Shown: positions 10,656-23,813 of the stretch, one piece after another
How positions within the stretch are numbered: the stretch's first letter is position 1
Layout of the letters: each line of letters begins with the position of its first letter
Sequence record: MW272540.1
DNA: 64,000 nt
Strand: one strand, 5' to 3'
Translations under genes and position numbers: made by a program
Notes under the pieces: model-generated
The model's input: only the letters and a program-made list of their open reading frames with translations
What the model was told of the DNA's origin: nothing
Database searches by the model: none

Positions 10656-10771
10656 ACGAACGAAGTGAGTCGCCGGAGGCGGTTCGCTACGCTCACAGAT
10701 TACTTTCTAATTATAGATCTTCTATATAAATACTTATAGAAACTTTATAGTTTGATTGCAAGTGAAACTAA
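10656..10771. repeat. Copy 1 of a two-module intergenic element (GC-rich hairpin + AT-rich 68-mer with TATAAATA)
   Basis: 10704-10771 matches 42625-42692 at 59/68; 18-mer 10656-10673 is the exact reverse complement of 42606-42623. Confidence 0.9.
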
Positions 10772-20217: not shown

Positions 20218-20296
20218 GGAGACTTTGGTGTATGGCGCACGGTACGTTATAAACACCGCGTACAAGAAACTCCCGTTCGAATCGGTAGGGTCTCCC
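20218..20296 (+). pseudogene. Degenerate tRNA-like element
   Basis: ggagact/ggtctcc acceptor, ccg-TTCGAAT-cgg T arm, irregular anticodon arm. Confidence 0.55.
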
Positions 20297-20333
20297 CTAA
20301 ATTTTATAATCTTAATTAAAAGAGGTTGTCTAT

Positions 20334-20651
20334 GTCGTCGCTAAACGCAAGCCACTTGGGCGGAAAGGAAAAAATTCGGTTTATGTAAGTGGATACACCA
20401 CTGATAATAAACCAGTAGTGTGTAACGTGTTTTATCAATCCGAAACAAACGGAATACCGCTTGATATTCTTATTGAGACTCTGTATAATTCGGGATATAT
20501 CATTGATTGGATCACATTCATTAATGATGCTCTAAAAGTTGGGTGGAAGAAAGAAACCATCTTCAAGAAGATAAAATACGCTTTCGATGATATCGATATA
20601 GAAAACAAAGAAAAGACTCTAGATAAAATATCTACCTATCTAGACCTATGA
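20334..20651 (+). CDS. AlaRS-fragment-like protein; start ambiguous or frameshifted
   Basis: VFYQSETNGIPLDIL...GYIIDWITF resembles AlaRS [14 protein letters not shown]...VDEAGF; SD-preceded ATG 20332 is out of frame. Confidence 0.55.
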   Translation, partial: VVAKRKPLGRKGKNSVYVSGYTTDNKPVVCNVFYQSETNGIPLDILIETLYNSGYIIDWITFINDALKVGWKKETIFKKIKYAFDDIDIENKEKTLDKISTYLDL

Positions 20652-20663
20652 GTTGTCATAGGT

Positions 20664-21211: not shown

Positions 21212-21215
21212 AATT

Positions 21216-21288
21216 CGGTGTGTAACTCAGTCGGTTAGAGGACGGGTAACCTGCCCGTTGGTCGCGGGTTCGAGTCCCGTCACACCAA
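21216..21288 (+). pseudogene. tRNA with a remodelled anticodon loop (taACCtg)
   Basis: D and T arms tRNA-like, acggg/cccgt stem, loop lacks U33 and purine 37, no CCA. Confidence 0.65.
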
Positions 21289-21312
21289 ATAGTTTCATAT
21301 AGTTAGGATTTT

Positions 21313-21672
21313 ATGAGAACGTGTACACGATGTAAATTATCAAAACCGTTATCGGAATTTTATAAAAGATCTGGGTTGCGTAGCTCTGAATACTATACAT
21401 GTTGTAAAATATGTCATAGTGCCGCCAACTCGATTAAATTTAATGGATTTAAAGATAAATGTCTTGAATATAAAGGATATTCTTGTTCTAAATGTGGATA
21501 TTCTAAATGTAAGGCGGCTCTTGAGTTTCACCACGTAGACCCTAGACATAAAGATTTTCAAATCTCAAGAAGATTTACCATGAAATGGGAAAACGTCATG
21601 AAGGAATTGGACAAATGTATAGTTGTATGTGCAAATTGTCATAGAGAAATTCATGAAGTTTTAGATGTGTAG
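21313..21672 (+). CDS. Free-standing HNH endonuclease with Zn fingers
   Basis: CTRC..CKIC, CSKCG...LEFHHVDP...CIVVCANCHREIH. Confidence 0.92.
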   Translation: MRTCTRCKLSKPLSEFYKRSGLRSSEYYTCCKICHSAANSIKFNGFKDKCLEYKGYSCSKCGYSKCKAALEFHHVDPRHKDFQISRRFTMKWENVMKELDKCIVVCANCHREIHEVLDV

Positions 21673-21697: not shown

Positions 21698-21774
21698 GGG
21701 GGATTAGCTCAGTTGGAATGAGCGACTGGTTTGCAACCAGTAGGTCATCGGTTCGAGCCCGATATCCTCCACCA
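21698..21774 (+). tRNA. tRNA-Ala(UGC)
   Basis: G3:U70 pair, actgg-tt TGC aa-ccagt, CCA. Confidence 0.96.
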
Positions 21775-21778
21775 AATC

Positions 21779-21854
21779 GCGGGTAAGGTGTTTATGGATA
21801 CATGTTAGCCTTCCAAGCTTAAGTAGACCGGATCGTTACCGGCTACCCGCTCCA
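21779..21854 (+). tRNA. tRNA-Gly(UCC)
   Basis: gcgggta/tacccgc acceptor, ct TCC aa loop, U discriminator, CCA. Confidence 0.92.
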
Positions 21855-21873: not shown

Positions 21874-22287
21874 ATGAGTGCTCCCAGTCGTGCGATCTTT
21901 TATCTAGATGGTATACGAGTAAATCACTGTTTCATTAATTGTGGTTGGTTTGAAGATTACGTGACCACCTTGGAACAGATAATCGAATTTGTTGAATCTG
22001 ATAAGTTTGAATTCGATGCTGTTGTTGCATATGGTCGAACTTTCTCTTCCGATCTTAATTATGAATTGACTCTACAGATTGAGTCTGATAAGCTTAAACA
22101 AGAAAAGATGAGAGAAAAATTTAATGGTGTACAAAAGCCACAACCTTTAGATATAAACCAAGTGATTTGTGATCTAGTAAAACGAAATCGTGGTAAAATC
22201 GCAAATGATATTGCATCTGAAATATGTGGTGTTCAACCGATGACTGGTTGTAGCGATGCGGTAAAATATCTAGCTTCTATTAAATAA
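21874..22287 (+). CDS. Hypothetical protein
   Basis: ORF with SD gagga. Confidence 0.8.
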   Translation: MSAPSRAIFYLDGIRVNHCFINCGWFEDYVTTLEQIIEFVESDKFEFDAVVAYGRTFSSDLNYELTLQIESDKLKQEKMREKFNGVQKPQPLDINQVICDLVKRNRGKIANDIASEICGVQPMTGCSDAVKYLASIK

Positions 22288-22295
22288 GGCATAGG

Positions 22296-22489
22296 GCTCT
22301 AGATTCCTAGTCAGTTTCGCACCCCTAGTTGCTGCATATACCCCGACTTTTCCGTGACTGGTGTAAAAAGGTTTGGGTAAACGTATTAAAGAAATCAGGA
22401 GACGTCCTGTGAAATCCTCGGACAGAACTTTGGTAGCCCCTCCCACCTTTGGTGTGGTGATGCGAAGAGTATAGACGGGGTATGAATTT
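22296..22489 (+). ncRNA. Candidate structured RNA (module A)
   Basis: ataccccg (22338-45) / cggggtat (22476-83) closing stem; shares motifs with 22570-23430. Confidence 0.55.
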
Positions 22490-22568
22490 CCGCGTGTAGG
22501 CTAGTCAGGTCGAGGTCGTCTGGTTTGGGACCAGAAAGTCGAAGGTTCAAATCCTTCCACGCGGACCA
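22490..22568 (+). tRNA. tRNA-Pro(UGG)
   Basis: tctgg-tt TGG ga-ccaga, CCA. Confidence 0.95.
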
Positions 22569-22569
22569 A

Positions 22570-23430
22570 TTAAGCACAAAGAACGGGATAACGGCGTATG
22601 TCCCCGGAAGAAGCCAGATAAATCTGGATATCCTGTAATGTGCCTTGAATTACAGGTGGGATTGGTAGTATAAAGACGATATGGTAACTACCCATTGACT
22701 AGCAGTGAGAAACTAGAGGTTACAGTCCTTAACCAAACTACGAACAGGTGGACCGAGATTCTATAGAGTGAGTAACCGGTTGCAAACGGACTCATAAAGT
22801 CGTCAAACCTTAGTACCCTCTCCCGAAAATATCGGTGATGCGACTAAAATGAAGGCGCAAATTGAGAATTTATTTTCACAAAGCTATTGCTTCTGGATTT
22901 AAATTCTCAGATACTCTTAAACATATGAACCAAGAGTATCTGAGAATTTAAGTTTAAAAAGAACTTCCTTCGGGAATGGGGTACATAGACGGGGCGCACC
23001 CCATTGTACCGACGCTTTAAGTAGCCAGTGCGAGAGACTAAAAAGCTGACCCTACCCTCTCCCAGTAATGGTGATGGAGCTTCCTTTCCTGTAATAAGGT
23101 TCCAGTCCGTGACGGGTAAAAGGTTACATAAGGAGACTGCTTGTGAATGACCACTGATTCAAGCCATCACATAAGCGCGTCCATCATGACGATAAAAGGG
23201 TAAGAGAGCAAAGTGAATTCTTGCCGTCAATCTATAGACGTTAAATGTAGACTGGTAAGTCCATCTTATGATGTGATAACGAGGCTTAGATTCCCGTAAG
23301 GGCCTAAGCGTAAAAGTAACGAGCAAGACCTTCTTGTAGGCTTAACTCATTGGGGTGTTTGAGGTTTACATGTGTGGGCTCGGGTAGCCAATGCTATTAA
23401 GTCTGGTGGTGGTGCGACCAGATCGTTTCT
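22570..23430 (+). ncRNA. Candidate large structured ncRNA (GOLLD/ROOL-sized or novel)
   Basis: 860 nt between two tRNAs with no ORF in the track; dense short hairpins with GNRA/UUCG loops; repeated module. Confidence 0.65.
22899..22951. repeat. Perfect 20-bp inverted repeat
   Basis: ttaaattctcagatactctt - 13 nt - aagagtatctgagaatttaa. Confidence 0.95.
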
Positions 23431-23504
23431 AGGGTGTTAGTATAGCGGTATTATGCCGGATTCCAAATCCGTGCGACTGGGGTTCGAATCCTCAACACCC
23501 TGCC
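23431..23504 (+). tRNA. tRNA-Trp(CCA)
   Basis: tt CCA aa loop, agggtgt/acaccct acceptor; abuts tRNA-Ile. Confidence 0.9.
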
Positions 23505-23586: not shown

Positions 23587-23674
23587 GGAGAAGTGGATGA
23601 GCGGTTTAAATCGCTCCCCTGCTAAGGGAGTAAACCGAAAGGTTTCGAGAGTTCGAATCTCTCTTTCTCCGCCA
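23587..23674 (+). tRNA. tRNA-Ser(GCU)
   Basis: ctccc-ct GCT aa-gggag, long variable arm, CCA. Confidence 0.95.
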
Positions 23675-23680
23675 AATATA

Positions 23681-23757
23681 GAGGATGTAGTAGAGTTGGT
23701 TAATATCCCAGCCTGTCACGTTGGAGATCGCGGGTTCGAGTCCCGTCATCCTCGCCA
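23681..23757 (+). tRNA. tRNA-Asp(GUC)
   Basis: ccagc-ct GTC ac-gttgg, CCA. Confidence 0.95.
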
Positions 23758-23813
23758 AATTAGGCCCATCTCAGCCTTTAATGAGACGTAGAAACTAACC
23801 AAAAGGAAATGAT

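Follow-up and report, generated by a model that had tools for sequence, protein, structure and literature searches.

Small structured RNA modules among the transfer RNA genes of Aeromonas phage ZPAH1

The DNA analyzed here is a stretch of 64,000 nucleotides (nt), called the window below, from Aeromonas phage ZPAH1 (MW272540.1, 100% identity), which belongs to Straboviridae, Emmerichvirinae, Ishigurovirus. All positions are window positions, i.e., record position minus 166,916. Among the transfer RNA (tRNA) genes of this phage, a region of about 1.1 kb (22288-23430) is without any annotated feature in the GenBank record. An earlier note on this DNA had described it as a structured non-coding RNA island bounded by tRNAs, with tRNA-Pro embedded in it, and had proposed one or several large RNAs, either of a divergent GOLLD type or of an undescribed class. 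The region is indeed non-coding, encodes structured RNA and is the counterpart of the T4 locus for species I/II RNA, as suggested there. Its right border is a tRNA gene, tRNA-Trp, and the left border is formed by an open reading frame (ORF) which follows tRNA-Gly, the nearest tRNA on that side. No credible ORF was found, in agreement with the note. On the + strand the longest ORF has 40 amino acids (aa), and the longest ones on the - strand have 60, 58 and 55 aa. The first of these three runs antisense to tRNA-Pro, and the frames of the ORFs of <=60 aa are disrupted by insertions and deletions in relatives (alignments A1 and A2). The GC content is higher than that of the coding flanks, again as noted (0.41-0.49 vs 0.32-0.37), and the neighbouring tRNA blocks have a GC content as high as that of the region. 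The 862 nt following tRNA-Pro (22569-23430) folded with a minimum free energy (MFE) of -258.6 kcal/mol compared to -228.4 +/- 6.2 kcal/mol for dinucleotide shuffles (z = -4.9), and 0 of 20 shuffles were equally good.

Comparison with 50,697 phage records by BLAST, together with local comparison with fetched loci, distinguished separately inherited units of about 65-200 nt, which relatives carry, lose or split by tRNA genes. They are described here as the modules M1 to M5 (Table 1). In Aswh_1, the closest relative, 22391-22488 and the whole of 22570-22749 are absent, i.e., M2 and half of M1; the 5' domain of M1 is present there and the 3' domain is deleted. AS-szw and CC2 possess the order tRNA-Pro, M2, tRNA-Thr, M4, M5, tRNA-Trp, with a tRNA in the slot of M3 in ZPAH1, and phage 65 has tRNA-Thr, Ile, Ser and Asp between M2 and M5. 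The smaller Aeromonas T4-like phages (44RR, 31, 25, Aes508, IME13 and others) are arranged as tRNA-Gly, M1, tRNA-Pro, M3, tRNA-Thr ... M5, tRNA-Trp. M1, the leader of tRNA-Pro, was found between tRNA-Gly and tRNA-Pro in the 44RR, AhFM11, IME13, 60AhydR15PP and phage 25 lineages. M5, the leader of tRNA-Trp, is present in 10 Aeromonas phages and directly upstream of tRNA-Trp in 9 of them, with the exception of phage 65. Relatives of the modules were also observed in tRNA clusters elsewhere (Pm5461, 121Q, Ci1, AhSzw-1 and the loci L017 and L053). For M2 and M4a, these clusters include those of unrelated phage families. Rather than one giant RNA, the region holds at least five separate small RNAs, each conserved and folded, which lie among tRNA genes and are relatives or analogues of the T4 species 1/2 RNAs. 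As the modules are inherited independently and are separated by tRNAs in relatives, tRNA-Pro, which does lie within the region, is a neighbour in a polycistronic tRNA operon and not an insert inside one RNA as had been supposed.

Table 1. Features of the ZPAH1 region and its borders, in window positions.
Feature	Position	Strand	Evidence or remark
tRNA-Gly, nearest tRNA on the left	21779-21854		
Left-border ORF, after tRNA-Gly	21874-22287		
M1 5' domain: near-invariant block CAGGGCUCUAGAUUCCUAGUCAGUUUCGCACCCC, then variable hairpin region	22290-22384	+	alignment, RNAalifold compensatory pairs
M1 3' domain, rnaD-like	22385-22487	+	matches of models R1 and R2 (E 0.39 each), compensatory pairs in A1
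tRNA-Pro (UGG)	22490-22568	+	ARAGORN; Rfam RF00005, 61.6 bits
M2 5' subdomain, two hairpins	22569-22631	+	alignment A4 with phage 65, AS-szw, CC2; Aeromonas phages only
M2 3' domain, four hairpins and pseudoknot	22632-22753	+	alignment A8, n=7
M3 5' domain, rnaD-like	22757-22866	+	alignment A6, RNAalifold
M3 long stem	22863-22975	+	repeats I1, I2, D1
M3 extension, ZPAH1 and Aswh_1 only (A2)	22961-23035	+	UUCG hairpin, AAUGGGGU/ACCCCAUU hairpin, second AUAGACGGGG motif (repeat D9)
M4a core, 95 nt	23036-23130	+	alignment A7
M4b, continuation common to AS-szw and CC2	23131-23196	+	BLAST 84-86% identity; alignment A3
Variable spacer, ZPAH1-specific	23197-23281	+	no counterpart in Aswh_1, AS-szw, CC2, phage 65
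M5, multi-branched, terminal hairpin GUCUGGU-(loop with GGUGCG)-ACCAGAU	23282-23430	+	alignment A9
tRNA-Trp (CCA), first of the block Trp-Ile-Ser-Asp	23431-23504	+	ARAGORN; Rfam 53.1 bits

Covariation among homologues was looked for, and compensatory double substitutions along with strand-specific G-U pairs were found in all five modules. The many conserved G-U pairs support the + strand as the encoding one. Five hairpins had been named in the earlier note. Three of them (22632-56, ~23284-309 and 23402-21) are present and are kept by compensatory changes in relatives. The fourth, ttcc-TTCG-ggaa (22965-76), occurs in ZPAH1 and its near-identical relative Aswh_1 alone, which are too few homologues for covariation. 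The fifth, a long-range pairing of cattgg with ccaatg (~23338-93), is missing from the consensus fold computed for 10 homologues, in which ccaatg forms part of a local hairpin.

Among all the modules, M2 has the best-supported predicted structure. Its hairpins and pseudoknot were set by hand and tested on A8, whose 7 sequences include Pm5461, 121Q and an IMG/VR contig; this revealed 98.2% of the cells in the 3' domain as paired compared to 18-45% when the 3' partners were slid. Compensatory changes were observed in 11 of the 25 pairs, and the observed values were reached by 0 of 500 shuffles. The 3' domain is situated between tRNA-Gly and tRNA-Asp in the Proteus T4-like phage Pm5461, within the tRNA region in the jumbo coliphage 121Q group, and directly upstream of tRNA-Thr in a 120-kb IMG/VR contig. 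The pseudoknot is formed by the Pd loop GUCC (22725-28) with the 3' tail GGAC (22750-53), and it covaries, being ACCC/GGGU in Pm5461 and AUCC/GGAU in the IMG/VR contig. A looser second pattern for M2 found no further relatives.

The M4a core has the layout AAAGN...CCCUCUCC-hairpin-GUGAUG...NCUUU, followed by a CCUGUAAUAAGG hairpin, a small hairpin and GGUUACA. As RNAalifold gave a poor structure for this module, the helices were set by hand and then tested (A7, n=21). The helices P1 (AAAGN/NCUUU), P2 and P3 are 92-97% paired with compensatory changes, and helices 4 and 5 are not well supported. Overall, 83.5% of the cells are paired vs 22-48% when slid, and the covariation score of 0.182 (control <=0.08) was reached by 0 of 500 shuffles. 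The sub-motif CCUCUCC-hairpin-GUGAUG is common to M3 and M4a, and a variant, CCCCUCCC...GGUGAUG, is present in M1. The strict pattern CCTCYCC...GTGATG has 2 matches in the 64-kb window, both in this region, where 0.04 are expected.

M4a was found in 26 IMG/VR loci by a three-part pattern, and a BLAST search with its coliphage copy matched 1022 phage records, including Escherichia (563), Klebsiella (161) and Shigella (76) phages. A pattern search of one genome each of 185,579 bacterial and archaeal species matched a single contig, L053 (JBOFFJ010000068.1, 4.9 kb), from a Phocaeicola metagenome-assembled genome (MAG) bin. With 23 tRNAs in the order of the T5-like phage AhSzw-1 along with M4a, it resembles phage DNA that was wrongly binned with a bacterial genome, and M4a appears so far in phage DNA only. 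The copy in AhSzw-1 itself lies between tRNA-Glu and tRNA-Ile and is 90.5% identical to that of ZPAH1, suggesting a recent exchange between unrelated Aeromonas phages. In T-even-type phages, M4a is situated after denV or an internal-protein gene and ahead of a vs.8-like P-loop gene, and carries extra 3' hairpins; in more than 1000 such genomes it is far from any tRNA. The T4 variant (NC_000866 ~64,800-64,935; L047:3800-3935, - strand) is situated between denV and vs.8 and extends over the first ~40 codons of the annotated coding sequence (CDS) of vs.8. The alignment of T4 vs.8 with its homologue in coliphage IME281 starts at T4 residue 26 and becomes clear only near residue 41 (MRTFLTG...), so the vs.8 start annotated in T4 may lie too far upstream. 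Literature searches found no described RNA upstream of T4 vs.8. In Klebsiella phage KLB31 (L013:1335-1634), two tandem copies of M4a were observed, the second of which overlaps the start of CDS MVRL130.

M1 is highly conserved among six lineages, with 86% column identity and long invariant blocks, and a hairpin insert is present in some lineages but not in others. RNAalifold predicted 65 pairs, 14 of them with compensatory changes. Its 3' domain is composed of a 5' hairpin, after which AAAUCCUCGGAC pairs with GACGGGGU and closes an arm of CCCCUCCC-hairpin-GGUGAUGCGA. Similarly, the 5' domain of M3 starts with a hairpin having the loop GUUGCAAA, followed by UAAAGUCGUC, which pairs with GGCGCA and closes an arm of CCCUCUCC-variable hairpin-GGUGAUGCGA; 10 of its 29 RNAalifold pairs are compensatory. 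The long stem of M3 contains a perfect 20-bp helix (22899-22918 with 22932-22951), one arm of which is duplicated upstream (22863-22881), making an alternative pairing possible. In 44RR, AhFM11, IME13 and phage 25 the sequence of this stem is changed, its complementarity is kept and an insert of ~100 nt is enclosed (A2). With a length of two helical turns, the stem is a plausible candidate site for RNase III. The loop of the first M3 hairpin (GUUGCAAA, 22780-22787) resembles the anticodon loop of tRNA-Ala(UGC).

In M5 (A9), 16 of the 31 consensus pairs are compensatory, with a covariation term of -7.5 kcal/mol. The CCC-GUAA-GGG hairpin, which has a GNRA loop, is swapped for UC-UUCG-GA, and the terminal loop containing GGUGCG is conserved. 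The terminal stem UCUGGU/ACCAGA (23402-23421) matches the anticodon stem of tRNA-Pro (22515-22535; repeat D10), and the loops of the two differ.

Although known since the 1970s, the small RNAs of the T4 tRNA region still have no known role (PMC3014915, PMC9697503). Two of them, RNAC and RNAD, are stable and can be seen on northern blots (PMC3014915, PMC9697503), and in an evolution experiment of 2025 a T4-like phage that was adapting to a semi-permissive host acquired a convergent single nucleotide polymorphism in rnaD (PMC12685909). The relation of the ZPAH1 modules to rnaD was analyzed with two covariance models, R1 built from M3 and R2 from six T-even rnaD sequences (A10). With filters off, the top match of R1 in the 5-kb T4 locus (10 kb searched) was the annotated rnaD with agreeing ends (L001:1547-1674, 11.8 bits, a weak E of 0.11). 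R1 also matched the 3' half of M1 (E 0.39) and a second unit of phage 65 which has the GUUGCAAA loop and GUAAGUCGUC (A11), and in 31 further loci it found nothing. R2 on the whole window (128 kb searched) placed the 3' half of M1 at rank 2 (E 0.39), and rank 1 was the anticodon arm of tRNA-Ala (21716-21777), a stem-loop resembling the rnaD hairpin. In RNAs of the rnaD type, the 5' hairpin may imitate an anticodon stem-loop.

T4 rnaD, M3 and the 3' half of M1 share a predicted architecture of a 5' hairpin and an arm closed by GUCGUCG/CGGCGC or a variant. Of the rnaD pattern, in which UAAGUCGUC pairs with CGGCGCA within ~110-120 nt, M3 (22757-22866) has UAAAGUCGUC and GGCGCA with the predicted closing stem, and the M1 3' domain has the variant AUCCUCG/CGGGGU. 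Like rnaD, which is about 110-120 nt long, these units lie inside a tRNA operon on the tRNA strand; M1 and M3 flank tRNA-Pro on the + strand. They also resemble it in the UAA(A)GUCGUC pairing with (C)GGCGCA around a variable arm after the 5' hairpin, and in an AGAA(A) run before the 3' strand. On the other hand, overall identity is below the reach of BLAST, and the inner arm CCUCUCC-hairpin-GUGAUGCG of the Aeromonas units is present in T4 rnaD only in rearranged form. ZPAH1 has at least two rnaD-like units around tRNA-Pro whereas T4 rnaD follows tRNA-Arg, and M3 is fused to the long 20-bp stem, unlike T4 rnaD. MAFFT gave no sensible alignment of rnaD with M3, and homology rests on the covariance-model matches and the architecture. 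On these grounds the T4 species 2 (rnaD) family probably includes M3 and the 3' half of M1 as distant members, and the three-way relation is consistent. T4 rnaC is comparable as a stable small RNA of the same type of locus. It possesses a tRNA-like T-arm, an acceptor-like 3' end and a weak tRNA-Sec-like match, but no ZPAH1 module is tRNA-like by ARAGORN or by Rfam at E <= 10.

Known RNA families were searched with Rfam 15, in the whole window at the gathering score and in 22200-23500 at E <= 10. At the gathering score only tRNAs matched, and at E <= 10 the matches were tRNA-Pro, tRNA-Trp and chance hits of the microRNA type on the AT-rich 20-bp hairpin. The inability of the earlier note to assign an Rfam family is thus borne out. 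The checks it had proposed for GOLLD (RF01998) and ROOL (RF03087) gave no match in the window at the gathering score or in 22200-23500 at E <= 10. Transfer-messenger RNA (tmRNA), RNase P RNA and 6S RNA were matched neither by the Rfam models nor, for tmRNA, by ARAGORN detection. No riboswitch of a known class matched in 22200-23500 at E <= 10, and no extra tRNAs or pseudo-tRNAs beyond tRNA-Pro and tRNA-Trp were found there by ARAGORN or by Rfam at that threshold. T4 rnaC and rnaD are likewise without an Rfam family. Hammerhead and K-turn readings were rejected as unsupported by a model match. Strings in M1 (GUCAGUUUC and ACAGAAC) which by eye resemble the 3' end of RNase P RNA were taken as coincidental, there being no model match.

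On the + strand of the region no sigma-70-like promoter or intrinsic terminator was found except a weak 9/12 site on its left edge (22240-22267), and the T4 late-promoter box TATAAATA is absent from it. Sites resembling terminators appear only from 24262 onward. Exact TATAAATA boxes in the window are situated at 10725, 28803, 29942, 42646, 45199 and 56371, all on the + strand; their count is not above chance and none is in the tRNA region. Most simply, the region would be transcribed by read-through from promoters located further upstream in the tRNA cluster.

The balance of the evidence tips towards M1-M5 being independent, processed structured RNAs. Within a long tRNA operon of the phage, the region would serve as the spacer part and encode compact small RNAs of ~95-280 nt each, presumably transcribed together with the tRNAs from early or middle promoters further upstream. 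Host RNase P would cut the 5' ends of tRNA-Pro and tRNA-Trp, and these cuts would set the 3' ends of M1 and M5. The other ends could be freed, in the manner of the T4 tRNA operon, by tRNA 3' processing, by RNase E and probably by RNase III at the 20-bp stem of M3, and the folded pieces may persist as stable RNAs like T4 RNAC and RNAD. More speculatively, they could act in trans as protein- or RNA-binding modules in the conflict between phage and host over tRNAs and translation, for example as decoys or sponges, with the invariant loops and the CCUCUCC/GUGAUG internal loop as recognition surfaces. Stable, trans-acting binding RNAs at the tRNA/translation interface are the favoured interpretation because of the phage-only distribution, the recurrence in tRNA clusters of three unrelated phage groups, the horizontal exchange, the invariant loops and the pseudoknot; any specific role is far less certain. 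That M2, M4a and perhaps the rnaD-like units are a class of horizontally mobile, phage-specific structured RNAs crossing between tRNA clusters of unrelated phages of the same hosts, and serve in trans as counter-defence decoys or sponges against host systems directed at tRNAs or translation, is a proposal of low probability. If true, it would give the RNAs of the T4 RNAC/RNAD type a function.

Several points weigh against this interpretation. Folded alone as single sequences, the individual modules have unremarkable MFE values (z -0.2 to -1.0). The rnaD cross-matches are all weak (E 0.1-0.4), and M3 itself was not reported by R2. The 5' block of M1 (CAGGGCUCUAGAUUCCUAGUCAGUUUCGCACCCC) is invariant and hence shows no covariation, so a constraint at the DNA level is possible for it. 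Co-transcription, processing and stability in ZPAH1 are argued from the analogy with T4, and the decoy role is a more speculative proposal. The positions of M4a in a 5' untranslated region in T-even phages and of M3 before a CDS in 44RR-like phages fit a role in cis at least as well as one in trans.

A role in cis could be that of processing scaffolds, in which the leaders and spacers present the tRNAs to RNase P, E or Z or shield the precursor, and have no role once cut off. The constant position of M1 directly 5' of tRNA-Pro in Aeromonas T4-like phages and that of M5 before tRNA-Trp in all aligned phages but one favour this explanation, as do the conserved short tails ahead of the tRNAs (A1 and A9) and the missing internal promoters and terminators. 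In phage 65, however, no tRNA-Trp follows M5 and M2 is away from tRNA-Pro, and M4a is nowhere near a tRNA in the T-even-type genomes. Moreover, the four-hairpin pseudoknotted fold exceeds the needs of a spacer, and T4 RNAC and RNAD accumulate as stable species (PMC9697503). Scaffolding is considered unlikely as the explanation, though it is the likeliest of the alternatives.

The modules could also be cis-regulatory leaders, either riboswitch-like or protein-binding operators, of which the ZPAH1 copies are orphaned or re-used aptamer domains. The M4a core of T-even phages precedes variable hairpins, after which come the Shine-Dalgarno (SD) sequence and ATG of the vs.8-like gene, as in riboswitch leaders. 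Likewise, M3 in 44RR, AhFM11 and 60AhydR15PP has mutually exclusive pairings and stops just before SD and ATG. Unlike riboswitch leaders, the modules match no known family and many copies have no downstream gene. No gene is downstream of any module in ZPAH1, and in ZPAH1, AS-szw, CC2, AhSzw-1 and L053 the cores precede tRNAs or RNA modules. In IME13 and phage 25, tRNA-Thr comes after M3, and the CDS behind M3 in 60AhydR15PP (L010:2091-2642, directly adjoining) encodes a mobile endonuclease of the T5orf172/GIY-YIG type, likely a secondary insertion. A leader function is judged improbable.

A constraint acting on the DNA, as homing-endonuclease targets, recombination scars or decayed tRNA genes in a hyperplastic region, would fit the HNH and T5orf172 endonuclease genes of these tRNA clusters, the mosaic organization and the invariant block of M1, but the compensatory double substitutions and strand-specific G-U pairs of all five modules speak against it, as does the lack of extra tRNA or pseudo-tRNA matches at E <= 10, and it is very unlikely. 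A single GOLLD- or ROOL-like RNA of ~1.1 kb with tRNA-Pro embedded, as the earlier note envisaged, is hardly credible: the region is adjacent to tRNAs in a large phage as GOLLD is, is phage-borne, non-coding and highly structured like both families, which are frequently close to tRNAs, folds as a whole better than shuffles and has a few weak inverted repeats (I3-I9) joining modules, but these repeats are 10-17 nt long with 76-92% complementarity and are not conserved, neither family matches even at E <= 10, GOLLD and ROOL are each one RNA of 500-800 nt whereas the ZPAH1 modules measure 95-280 nt, and no contiguous RNA of ~800 nt is conserved as a unit, since the pieces are independent and tRNA-separated in relatives.

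At least four families of this region are absent from Rfam, one of them having a covarying pseudoknot and one being present in more than 1000 sequenced phages including T4. Some of the motifs may be contained, without names, in the 2023 catalogue of 10,006 viral candidate RNAs. The RNAs of the T4 type are thus a diverse, modular and exchangeable repertoire and not a peculiarity of T4, and the modules provide alignable targets for deletion and pull-down work in T4 and laboratory strains of E. coli.

Mobile endonuclease genes were observed within these tRNA clusters, which is consistent with mosaic gain and loss of modules. Apart from the gene of 60AhydR15PP, ZPAH1 possesses one at 21313-21672, with a weak HNH match below the Pfam cut-off.

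Several genome annotations are corrected by the analysis. The ZPAH1 CDS ZPAH1_orf00318 ('hypothetical protein', window 23597-23791) lies wholly over tRNA-Ser (23587-23674) and tRNA-Asp (23681-23757) and is for this reason probably spurious. Similarly, the minus-strand CDS ASwh1_270 of Aswh_1 (L003:1075-1422) overlaps tRNA-Gly, the M1 5' domain and tRNA-Pro and is probably spurious. ARAGORN detected 19 tRNAs in the window, and the fetched 15-kb stretch of the ZPAH1 record lists no tRNA feature. Two of the ARAGORN calls are unusual. The first, tRNA-Gly at 21215-21289, has the anticodon ACC (Rfam 42 bits); the second, tRNA-Ile(UAU) at 20219-20297, has its anticodon at position 30 and no Rfam tRNA match at the gathering score. 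A gap of 366 nt (20298-20663) between tRNA-Ile and tRNA-His contains an unannotated GTG-initiated ORF of 77 aa (20418-20651).

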